A DNA stretch of 64,000 nt from Macrostomum hystrix (taxonomy: Eukaryota > Animalia > Platyhelminthes). The stretch is from the NCBI GenBank assembly GCA_950097015.1, contig CATNEN010000007.1:5456001-5520000 (forward strand). Reading direction: 5' to 3'. Below the pieces are notes generated by a model. It ran no database searches, was not told the DNA's origin, and saw only the letters and a list, made by a program, of their open reading frames with translations. Positions 59,865-64,000 of this stretch are shown piece after piece. Positions within the stretch are counted from its first letter, which is position 1, and each line of letters begins with the position of its first letter. The translations under genes were made by a program, and so were the position numbers.

Positions 59865-60296
59865 TACATTTGACTTGGGCCTTATTTTCGTGAATTGCTC
59901 TGTAGCACAATAACACTGACTGTGCGGCGAGTGACTCGAGAATTATATAGAACTCGGCAACTGTACAGAAAACTGCTCATCTTTTATCTGCAGCTCCTAC
60001 CCATTGTGTGACAATAACAGTAAGAGAGGTTGACCAAATAAATGCTAGCCATTTGCACCTGCTGCTCCGAGTGCGATCTGATATTAATTTCCACAAAAGA
60101 CTGCACACCTCATGCGCGTGCTTTGCTAGATGTCCCGCGGGCCAAACAAATAATAAAACACACACGGCGGATCTGATTGACAGTAGTACAGATGAGGCAT
60201 AAGCGAAATGAGTTGAATGGGATTCAATAAAGGGTTAGAAGTTTCTTAAAGTTGCATTCCCTAAAGCTAGTAATTGTACTTACATTACTTACCACA

Positions 60297-60537
60297 TGTC
60301 TTTACTTCAAGTGATTTACGAAGCGAAGCGAGTTGAAGTCATGAAATAAATTGAATCTTCGCAGTAAGAAACCGTCTTTACGGCCAAACCTCAAACGAGA
60401 CAGAGAGCGCAATGGGGGGTTGGGGTACAATCGTGGAGAGTAGCAGGGCAGGGGGAAGGAGGGGGGTGCAGCGATTTAGAAAAGAGAGACACAATCAGAG
60501 CAAGTACAAACAAGTCGCGTAACCAAAAGTCGCTACA
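60297..60537 (-). repeat. 3' LTR (241 bp, TGT...ACA)
   Basis: Preceded by polypurine tract GGGGGAG (60544-60538); 60297-60384 is identical to 63913-64000. Confidence 0.92.
60340..60384 (-). other. Spliced-leader exon-like 45-mer in the 3' LTR
   Basis: GCCGTAAAGACGGTTTCTTACTGCGAAGATTCAATTTATTTCATG; 3 differences from the Macrostomum lignano SL as I recall it. Confidence 0.85.
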
Positions 60538-61072
60538 CTCCCCCAAATGACAAAGACTGTCATTTCGAGTTCGAACTAAGCATTAAACAATTGAACAAGG
60601 GCAACGGAACAAAAAAACGACAATTTTGAGAGACTGAAAGGGACACAAGTACGAGCATTGACGAAAAAAATGTGTCCTCCACGAAGATTAAGCAATGACG
60701 TACGATTTTACGAGTAGATAGATTAGTTGGCCAAAAATTAACAAAACTGACAACGACCTAGCCGACAGAAATTATATTGAAATTTACGTTACAAGTACGT
60801 TTACGAGTCACGAGTCCCTCATTAACATATTGAATGATGATATGATAATTTGCAACCGAGTTGTGACGCAAAAACTAAATGACTGAATGATAACTACAGG
60901 GTACAAATGAGGGTCAGGGAAGCAAAAAAGGTGTAAGTGAATGAGAACAGATGGAAACGCGATAACAAGAGTCGAGAACAAAAAATGAGCAAAAATTATC
61001 AAGGTAGCTGATCTCGCACCAATGAACAGAACAGAAGAATTTAGAGAAACAGAGATCCGAGACGGAGACCGA

Positions 61073-63724
61073 TTAGATGCACAATTCAAGAGGAATGAGA
61101 GCTTGGACAGGCCGTCTGATGCGCTCAGCCCCCCGAGAGCCCCTTTCCTTCGCCAGACGTACAACTGCGGAACGAACGGCACCATCTCGACCCTCACGGA
61201 CAGACTCTACCACACCCATCTTCCATTGCAGTCTTGGCTGATGCGGCTCTCCCTGAACCAAAACGACGTCTCCGGGTTTTGCAACTGGTCCTCCTCCATG
61301 CGACTTGAGCGCTTTCTCACGCAGGGCGGTGACATATGACGTTTTCCATACATCCCAAAAAACATTCAACGCTCTTCTGAGATGTTTGAGTCGAGCTGGC
61401 AATGGCAGGACGTTGGCGATACGGTTCGACGAGAGAGTTGGCTCCTGAGTCAACCGAGTTCCGAAGAGAAAGTGCGCAGGCGTCAATACGTCGTTGATCT
61501 CATCCGCCGACACATACATAAGTGGTCGACTGTTCACCACAGATTCCATTTCGATAACCGAAGTTGATAGCTCATCGAATGTTAGCAGAGCTTTGCCAAT
61601 GCTCTTTTTCAATCCATCCTTAATGATTCCAACGAGTCTTTCCCAAAATCCGCCCCACCACGGGGCCTTCTCCGGAATGAACTCCCAAGAGATTTTCTTG
61701 TTGGCACAGAATGATTGAACTTCATAGCTGGTGCTAGCTCCGAGAATATTCGCGGCAGCCTTAACGTCTTGGCATTGTCACTGATGATGGAAGGTATTCC
61801 GCGACGACTGACAAAACGACGTAATCCATTCAAGAACTGCGATGCGGTCATGTCAGGAAGCAGTTCCAGATGCACTGCGCGAGTCGATGAGCATGTGAGA
61901 AGTATAATGTACGCCTTCCGAGATTCACAACCATCCTCCCCCGTCCGATAGAATATCGGACCACAGTAGTCCACGCCGACTGATTGAAAGGGTCGGATGT
62001 CGGAAAGGCGAAACTCAGGCAGCTGAGAGATCTGAGGTACAACGTATGAGCGTCCTTGAACCTTCCTACACACCACACACTTCGATAATTCGTGCTTGGT
62101 TCGTTGACGTCCCTTCAGAATCCAATATTTTTCACGAACTTTACTAAGCGTTGAGGCAACTCCCCCGTGAGCAACGGACTGATGAGCTTGTCGAATAATG
62201 AGCTGCTCCAAGTGACTGTGGCGAGGTACTAAGATAGGACTATTAACTTCGAAGGACAGTGCGGAAATACGACCTTGTGAACGCAAAAGTCCCTTATCAT
62301 CTAATCACAGATTCAAGTTCCTGTTCAGATGTGTTGCAGCAGAGCTACGCCGAATGTGATCGATTTCCTTTGAAAACGATTCCCTTTGAATTGACCTTAC
62401 CAATAGGACTTCTGCATCAGTCAACTCTTCGGCGGTCACCGTCCTTGATTTATTGACTAACGATTGAGCTCGAGCACTCCGTAGGTTGCGGACAAATCTT
62501 TGTACCCATGCTAGGACGCGTAAAACTCTCGAATAGTTCGAAAACTTGCCTATGTCAATGATTAAAGAGATACGATCGACGTTCTTAGATTCCATGGGCT
62601 GTTCAGCGACTGTTGATAGTGCTTCTGCAGAGTTATGATCTTCCGCGACTGTGCTCGAATGCTTATCTTCAGACGAAACTGGGTAGATGCCTGATCGAAG
62701 AAATTCGGGACCACTAAACCACACCTTGTTTTTCTGTAGCTGCCCTGGAAGTAAGCCTCGAGATGGCAGGTCGGCGGGGTTCAGTTCCCCGGGAACATGT
62801 CGCCACTCGGACGTTGACGTGAGAGTCCGGATCTCCTTAACGCGGTTTTGAACGAAAACTTGGCGAAGCTTGTCGGTGTTGGTGATCCACTGCAGAGTTG
62901 TCTTGCTGTCTGTCCAGAGATAACGCGTCATGCTGGGAAATTGCAGACACCGTGCGTATTAGACGAGCTAAGATTAGGGCTCCCAGCAGTTCTAGTCTAG
63001 CGATGCTAAGATTTGATAGCGGTGCTACGCGCGTTTTGGCCTGAATTAAATGCGTTGAAACGTTGTTTGTTTCCGACCGGGCCTGAATGTAGACACAGGC
63101 AGCGTAAGCAGATTCGCTTGCATCACAGAATCCATGTAATTCCATTCGAACTGGCTCCGAATCGAGATCGGCGAAAAGGTAGCGAGGAACTTCGAAGCGT
63201 GAGCTCGACAACGACTGTAACCAACGGTTCCAACTCTCGGCGATATCTGGCGGAAGTTCGTCGTCCCAACCCGACTTGCGAACACACAGTTTCTGTAGCA
63301 TCACCTTGACAACAGTCAAAGAGGGTGACAAGATTCCTAACGGATCGTACACAGACGCAAGTACTCCTAGCATCGACCTCTTGGTTGAAGAGGATCCGTT
63401 GACGTGGGTAACTAGCTCAGAAAACTGCATGACGAATGTGTCCCTGACCGAGTCCCAGTGGAGTCCAAGCACTTTTTCTGTATGACCAACATCCTGATCG
63501 GGTAGCGAGCTGTTGAACGAATCTGAGTTGGATTTCCACTGTCGCATATTCATGCCAGCCAGGTTGAAGATATTTTTTGCATCTTTGTAGAGATTGAATG
63601 CGTCACTTAGAGATTTACAGCTTGTCACTAAATTGTCGACGTACAAGTCTTTGCGAATAATCTCAGCGGCGAGTGGAAAATTATTCTTCTGGCTATCAAT
63701 GTGTTGAAGGACCCTAGCTCTCAA
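61073..63724 (-). pseudogene. Fragmented pol (partial RT, RNase H, integrase)
   Basis: Four consecutive ORFs separated by frameshifts near 62930, 62295 and 61760. Confidence 0.9.
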
Positions 63725-63900
63725 GACACCAGGAGAGCACGTAAAACTGGCTCAAGACTGGCAGGCGTGAGCCAGTAGACGGGAGAGCGAGCGAGGCCGG
63801 CAGCAGACGAAGAGGCGAGCGAGACCGGCAGCATACAAAGAGGTGAGCGAGACCGCCAGCAACTTCGACCGAATCGATGAGAAGACGACTGACAGACGGC

Positions 63901-63912
63901 GTTCGGGCGCCA
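63901..63912 (-). promoter_or_regulatory. Primer binding site, tRNA-Lys(UUU) type
   Basis: TGGCGCCCGAAC directly after the LTR-terminal CA; matches the first 12 nt of the known tRNA-Lys3 PBS. Confidence 0.85.
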
Positions 63913-64000
63913 TGTCTTTACTTCAAGTGATTTACGAAGCGAAGCGAGTTGAAGTCATGAAATAAATTGAATCTTCGCAGTAAGAAACCGTCTTTACGGC
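63913..64000 (-). repeat. 5' LTR (partial)
   Basis: 88 nt identical to the 3' LTR end. Confidence 0.92.
63956..64000 (-). other. Spliced-leader exon-like 45-mer in the 5' LTR
   Basis: Identical to 60340-60384. Confidence 0.85.

Follow-up and report, generated by a model that had tools for sequence, protein, structure and literature searches.

Near the end of a 64,000-nucleotide stretch of the genome of the flatworm Macrostomum hystrix (hereafter the window; positions 5,456,001 to 5,520,000 of contig CATNEN010000007.1, from the 220,453,370-bp, 42-contig assembly GCA_950097015.1; PMC10468722) lies a long terminal repeat (LTR) retrotransposon that carries, in both of its LTRs, a 45-nt block matching the exon of the host spliced leader (SL) RNA at 42 of 45 positions. 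An earlier note, made from the sequence without database searches, had placed this 45-mer in both LTRs, 43 nt before the LTR end, and we confirm the placement. The window holds exactly two copies of the 45-mer, both on the minus strand (60340-60384 in the 3' LTR and 63956-64000 in the 5' LTR), identical to each other and each ending 43 nt short of an LTR end, where 0 matches are expected from 100 shuffles.

The element that carries these blocks is a genuine BEL/Pao-group LTR retrotransposon, present as an internally deleted, defective copy. Its target-site duplication, primer-binding site and polypurine tract support the earlier identification of an LTR retrotransposon with a leader in both LTRs. 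On the minus strand, the 3' LTR (60297-60537, 241 bp) and the 5' LTR (63913-64154, 242 bp, of which the last 88 nt, 63913-64000, fall in the window) both run from TG to CA, and their alignment shows one substitution and one 1-nt indel. The same five bases, TGTGG in element sense, flank both LTRs, with the 3'-side copy at 60292-60296 and its partner at 64155-64159, just past the window end. A polypurine tract, GGGGGAG (60538-60544), immediately precedes the 3' LTR. The 5' LTR is immediately followed by a primer-binding site, TGGCGCCCGAACG (63900-63912), which recurs in other copies; a search of the window for the tRNA itself found none. Between these two sites, the internal region (60545-63899) comprises a short leader followed by pol sequence from the 3' side only, now broken up into four or more overlapping open frames. 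The BEL/Pao assignment was made because these frames carry Pao peptidase (Peptidase_A17, E = 3e-47), integrase zinc-finger (Integrase_H2C2) and DUF5641 domains. Aligned to a full copy, the window element is missing ~3.04 kb that correspond to gag, protease and part of the reverse transcriptase.

Both LTRs also lack ~136 nt found in other LTRs of the family. This deletion lies between two C-runs (60411-60420; 64028-64037), takes out a TATA-like box and a TGAGTCA motif, and as a microhomology deletion common to both LTRs it probably arose during reverse transcription of the parent. The ATG that terminates the leader block opens a frame of just eight codons (60316-60342, minus strand, in the 3' LTR) that stops within the LTR and is not the start of gag; the same eight-codon frame is present in the A-type LTR of the family, and the gag-pol frame starts ~590 nt after the LTR.

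The window copy looks like a recombinant of two subfamilies. Its LTR end and leader region (63700-63899 compared with L074:983-1185, from a second copy of the family) are just 87-91% identical to the young subfamily described below, and its pol part is 98.5% identical. A reading of the window LTR as the U3 of one subfamily joined to the R-U5 of another, which would have provided a marker of R, was dropped as the alignment of U3 offers too few diagnostic sites.

The host spliced leader and its copies

The true SL RNA gene of M. hystrix consists of a 45-nt exon followed by a GTAAG donor, an Sm-like site AUAUUUUUAG and a terminal hairpin, and the 109-nt SL RNA folds into the canonical three hairpins (z = -4.0). 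These genes stand in tandem arrays with a period of ~11.6-11.7 kb on three contigs (C15, C17 and C42); the array on C17 flips its orientation midway. A lone, 5'-truncated SL RNA gene copy also occurs outside the arrays (C1:16047419-16048447); its leader begins at position 6, and its GTAAG donor, Sm-like site and hairpin are intact. The last 35 nt of the M. hystrix exon equal the leader of Macrostomum lignano as published (PMC8629364), and the 42/45 match that the earlier note had given for the M. lignano SL proved right, the SL RNA genes of M. hystrix carrying exactly that leader. Our metagenome scan with the leader (JGI contigs) recovered one true SL gene and five trans-spliced host mRNAs, and no LTR. 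The SL gene, on an environmental contig, is a second macrostomid one and combines an identical exon with changed intron part and hairpin sequences, and the mRNAs are metatranscriptome contigs that start with the leader on host messages, among them porin-like, GAPDH-like and CCHC zinc-knuckle ones. The host SL exon shows no difference between M. hystrix, the environmental macrostomid and the published M. lignano 35-mer, and is thus strongly conserved.

The LTR block has none of the other features of this gene. It differs from the host exon at three positions in the window copy and is followed by ACTTC (ACTTC or GCTTC across the family), with no GT donor and no Sm site, in agreement with the earlier judgement that it is not an SL RNA gene. 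We found no similarity between the LTR flanks and the SL-gene flanks at E < 1, the best resemblance between the LTR and the sequence upstream of the SL gene being a weak, TATA-like one over 16 nt (E = 1.1).

Leader-derived sequences are also dispersed through the rest of the genome. A 29-mer of the leader gives 83 genomic matches with at most two mismatches, and a 21-mer gives 347 with at most three, against 7 for the reversed control. Fewer than 30 of the 21-mer matches are arrayed SL genes, leaving ~320 further relics that are scattered in the genome. The flanks of 40 such dispersed copies sort into several repeat families, and in at least eight different flank contexts the homology spans leader nucleotide 1 to 44-45. 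One family, represented by at least 48 LTR matches, has the block ending 11 nt short of the LTR end, which is followed by a TGGCGCC primer site. The carriers include a Gypsy-type element (RVT_1, RT_RNaseH and rve domains) whose LTR matches are paired 7.2-8.4 kb apart. A genome search with the gag domain returned 122 places, and a second BEL/Pao gag match has a leader variant ~0.9 kb upstream. A search for the combined pattern of leader and primer site gave just nine exact cases, from two families. At C1:19307000-19314500 (L083), two 2.8-kb direct repeats that are 99.6% identical each contain a leader-like block together with opposite-strand open frames of 314-355 aa, an arrangement unlike a simple LTR pair.

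Inheritance and drift of the block

A genome search with the window LTR returned ~60 matching pieces. Full copies of the family are ~7.2 kb long and have a single open frame of ~1780 aa with DUF1759, RVT_1, Peptidase_A17, Integrase_H2C2 and DUF5641 domains. Several of them have LTR pairs that are 100% identical, and the family has therefore moved recently. The closest protein relative of the element, 48% identical, is on a JGI contig, and a metagenome scan with the protein of that relative found nothing.

The idea that every copy of the family keeps the leader was borne out by the LTR search: the block occupies the same position in 21 of the 21 distinct LTR ends that we extracted, intact copies included. 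Its variants are nested, with as few as 0 and as many as 7-9 departures from the host leader. The most divergent subfamily has 0 or 1 difference, after which changes are added at position 30, then 37, then 20, and then 7-9 and 14, the last of these in the young subfamily. One subfamily carries the exact host leader in an LTR that otherwise differs from the others by ~12%. The young, abundant subfamily has 7-9 differences in the 45 positions in total, the same seven of which are common to all of its copies. The block and the 45 nt upstream of it have pairwise diversities of 0.106 and 0.103, respectively, and the 34 nt directly upstream of the block are nearly invariant and more conserved than the block itself. 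Because the differences from the host leader are nested, the pattern is that of a single capture at the root of the family and ordinary descent thereafter. A block held to the host version, or repeatedly refreshed from the host leader, does not fit it.

The geometry of the putative promoter would place the block within the transcribed part of the LTR. The sole TATA-like box conserved in the family lies ~70 nt upstream of the block, and a similar box in the SL gene lies ~35 nt upstream of the leader. The start of transcription is therefore predicted ~35 nt before the block, in the invariant stretch, and the block would be internal to R or to the 5' untranslated region. Given this spacing, the earlier suggestion that transcription begins at the first G of the leader is not supported.

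Contigs (47-50 Mb for each run) were available from four runs of one study, whose run type is not on record. From their size (~48 Mb each) and from the pattern of flanks, namely one genomic flank after the LTR end and only internal sequence before the LTR start, we infer that the four runs are RNA assemblies. Their contigs cover the whole element and include the LTR with the family's own leader variant, which shows no differences. In one run a single contig begins in the 3' internal region, crosses the LTR and reaches the primer site and the leader region. These data suggest that the family is transcribed.

Origin of the block

We hypothesize that the block, captured once in each lineage, is a molecular fossil of an element RNA that was trans-spliced and reverse transcribed, and that it has since been inherited passively in the transcribed part of the LTR; we consider this account probable. 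The RNA of an ancestral BEL/Pao element would have been trans-spliced to the host SL at an acceptor upstream of the primer-binding site, within the 5' end derived from the LTR. Reverse transcription would then have run through to the 5' end of the leader, so that the minus-strand strong-stop DNA ended with the leader complement. The first strand transfer would have brought this copy of the leader to the new LTR, where extension into U3 would give the order U3, leader, downstream R/U5. Both progeny LTRs and all descendants would thereafter encode the leader, a placement that follows the standard model of LTR formation. From then on the block would have been copied as ordinary LTR sequence and would have drifted, and today it would lie on the R/U5 side of the LTR, probably ~35 nt downstream of the transcription start. 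Under this hypothesis the block has no need to mimic the host leader faithfully.

An origin from trans-spliced RNA is well supported. The homology is confined to the exon, from nucleotide 1 to 44-45, and is therefore the signature of a cDNA made from a mature trans-spliced 5' end. The earlier note had offered two origins, and it is the reverse transcription of a trans-spliced RNA that accounts for a complete exon with exact ends; the other, capture of an SL gene with its promoter, finds no counterpart in the flanks, as reported above. A trans-spliced RNA can still be reverse transcribed only if the acceptor lies upstream of the primer-binding site, and the zone that the block occupies, between the LTR body and that site (ending 43 nt before the LTR end here and 11 nt before it in the other family), fits this requirement. 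Acceptor-like sequences are also found next to the block. In the family of the window element a pyrimidine run and an AG stand 6-7 nt before it, another family has TT(C/T)CAG directly adjoining it, and two more have an A that makes an AG with the first G of the leader. The trans-splice acceptor motif of M. lignano, as published, is YTNCAG.

The way in which the leader was joined to the LTR is a separate matter. The route that we favour, although we would not call it likely, is a misaligned minus-strand transfer with re-priming on or beside the acceptor AG, which would have kept the acceptor upstream of the inserted leader. A short homology on the downstream side of the acceptor would have anchored such a transfer, and the G of the AG would have served for re-priming.

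Several points weigh against the fossil hypothesis. The pattern of AG at the junction is only suggestive, having been judged by eye in ~9-13 families. We found no pre-capture relative, that is, an LTR in which the acceptor is joined straight to the downstream sequence with no leader. No splice of the host leader onto the family was seen in the contigs of the four runs, in which rare forms are lost and RNA ends do not show. A cDNA with a 3' end unmatched to the acceptor should seldom undergo strand transfer, yet many families carry the block, and selection could explain this. Finally, the start site that we use is one predicted from a TATA-like box.

Selection is the basis of the best surviving alternative, that the block is a functional module of the LTR. 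It could serve as an R repeat in minus-strand transfer, as an initiation region or as both, or else as a leader that disguises the element RNA as a host trans-spliced mRNA for export, translation or escape from surveillance. Consistent with such a role, BEL/Pao and Gypsy families both carry the block near the LTR end, and it is kept in young copies with identical LTRs and an uninterrupted frame of ~1780 aa. A small CCGU/ACGG hairpin persists in the youngest subfamily despite a changed loop, and the probable RNA-derived contig that runs from the internal region through the LTR to the leader region implies an overlap of at least 31 nt. However, the block drifts at the rate of its flank, the 34 nt just upstream are better conserved than the block, and the 45-mers fold no better than shuffles. 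The subfamily that amplified most recently is also the one most diverged from the host leader (7-9/45), while the host exon is invariant, so that the mimicry of host mRNAs proposed in the earlier note is not supported. The Sm site is absent and, given what is established about the capping of SL RNAs, a trimethylguanosine cap is therefore not expected. The leader's ATG would burden the transcript with an eight-codon upstream frame ~590 nt before gag, and the TATA-like box stands at ~70 nt instead of the ~35 nt of the SL gene. A role of the block as part of the R repeat, or as the terminal redundancy proposed in the earlier note, is possible, but an R role requires no likeness to the host leader and is hence compatible with the fossil hypothesis and not opposed to it. 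On balance we regard a functional module as unlikely, though as an explanation to be taken seriously.

A related scenario, to which we give somewhat less credence, has the BEL/Pao and Gypsy lineages acquiring the block independently and keeping it for terminal redundancy, or as a 5' leader that aids RNA replication or handling in a trans-splicing host. Its entry would have been through a minus-strand transfer of an undescribed kind, in which re-priming at the trans-splice acceptor places the entire leader after that acceptor.

It is very improbable that the block is re-acquired or corrected in each generation by ongoing trans-splicing, with the element DNA mirroring the current host leader. 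The presence of the exact host leader in one subfamily, in spite of the ~12% divergence of the rest of its LTR, would agree with such a process, as would the acceptor-like AG a few bases upstream of the block. But the variants nest strictly, every copy of the young subfamily has the same seven differences, the sequence at the downstream junction of the block (...CATG|A or |G) is not an acceptor, and no contig of the four runs joins the host leader to sequence of the family.

The weakest alternative, capture of the leader as DNA from an SL RNA gene by recombination (perhaps with its promoter) or an element that inserts specifically into SL genes, is already contradicted and scarcely credible: SL RNA genes are abundant and arrayed, and there is the weak 16-nt TATA-like likeness (E = 1.1), but the homology stops exactly at both exon ends, with no intron, Sm site or upstream gene sequence, the element makes ordinary 5-bp duplications at unrelated sites, and it encodes a BEL/Pao protein set and not a non-LTR reverse transcriptase with a restriction-like endonuclease. 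NeSL-1, SLACS, CZAR and CRE are non-LTR retroelements that insert in SL RNA genes. They have in common with the window element that a retroelement is tied to SL sequence, whereas the window element carries the SL exon itself and inserts elsewhere, and the difference from NeSL and CRE/SLACS drawn in the earlier note holds with its LTR structure and unrelated insertion sites.

Relation to known systems

Leader fragments at LTR and LINE loci have been reported from the genomes of parasitic flatworms, where 597 loci were discarded (Calvelo et al. 2025, PMC12582326), and this weakens the possible novelty raised in the earlier note. As in M. hystrix, those loci have host SL sequence without the other features of an SL RNA, they are tied to retrotransposons, and the authors propose the integration of retrotransposon RNA that had been trans-spliced to the leader. 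They are, however, described as partial leaders, a by-product set aside during SL-gene annotation, and their position within the element is not given. Here, in a free-living species, the exon is complete, has a fixed position in both LTRs and is inherited along a dated series of subfamilies, and acceptor-like sequence is kept upstream. Our finding is thus of a kind already noted and not categorically new, and it adds an anatomically clean case.

Relict SLs are also known from dinoflagellate retrogenes (Slamovits and Keeling 2008, as cited in PMC12582326; PMC5585692). They resemble the LTR block in being a DNA copy of a trans-spliced leader left by the reverse transcription of a mature RNA. The dinoflagellate relicts, however, belong to host genes recycled as cDNA and are often tandem and truncated, whereas the carrier here is the retrotransposon's own LTR. 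Trans-splicing of a retrotransposon RNA is known for Cer1, an LTR retrotransposon of Caenorhabditis elegans, whose RNA can receive an SL (PMC3315495). In Cer1, SL1 is found on a spliced 2.4-kb subgenomic RNA only and the leader is not encoded by the LTR (PMC3315495), in contrast to the window element. Within the same genus, M. lignano has a genomic copy of the leader at the 5' end of a protein gene that was once taken for an SL RNA gene (PMC8629364). This copy is likewise a genome-encoded leader without SL RNA structure, but it occupies a single host gene locus and not an LTR.

If the fossil hypothesis is correct, retrotransposon RNAs in a free-living flatworm were substrates for SL trans-splicing, and reverse transcription can write a leader into an LTR from which it is afterwards inherited. 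The clean dated series, from the exact leader to 7-9 changes, allows rates and constraints to be measured on the R/U5 side of the LTR. There is also a risk for annotation, in that upwards of 300 leader copies in the genome can pass for SL RNA genes, trans-splice sites or leader-donated start codons. Were the block functional, it would represent a new way for mobile elements to exploit trans-splicing.

The insertion sites of the family also deserve mention. The second family copy (L074) is flanked by a 5-bp CCACC duplication. Four of five full-length copies of the young subfamily (L074, L075, L077 and L078) are inserted in short-period tandem repeats, with the same satellite on both sides of the element, which could reflect a target preference or better survival there. 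Just past the window end (L031:360-560, minus strand), the start of the window element's 5' LTR is preceded at ~180 nt by the stop codon of a host gene with the same orientation, and at ~25 nt by an AATAAA-like signal; the element has therefore landed at the 3' end of that gene.

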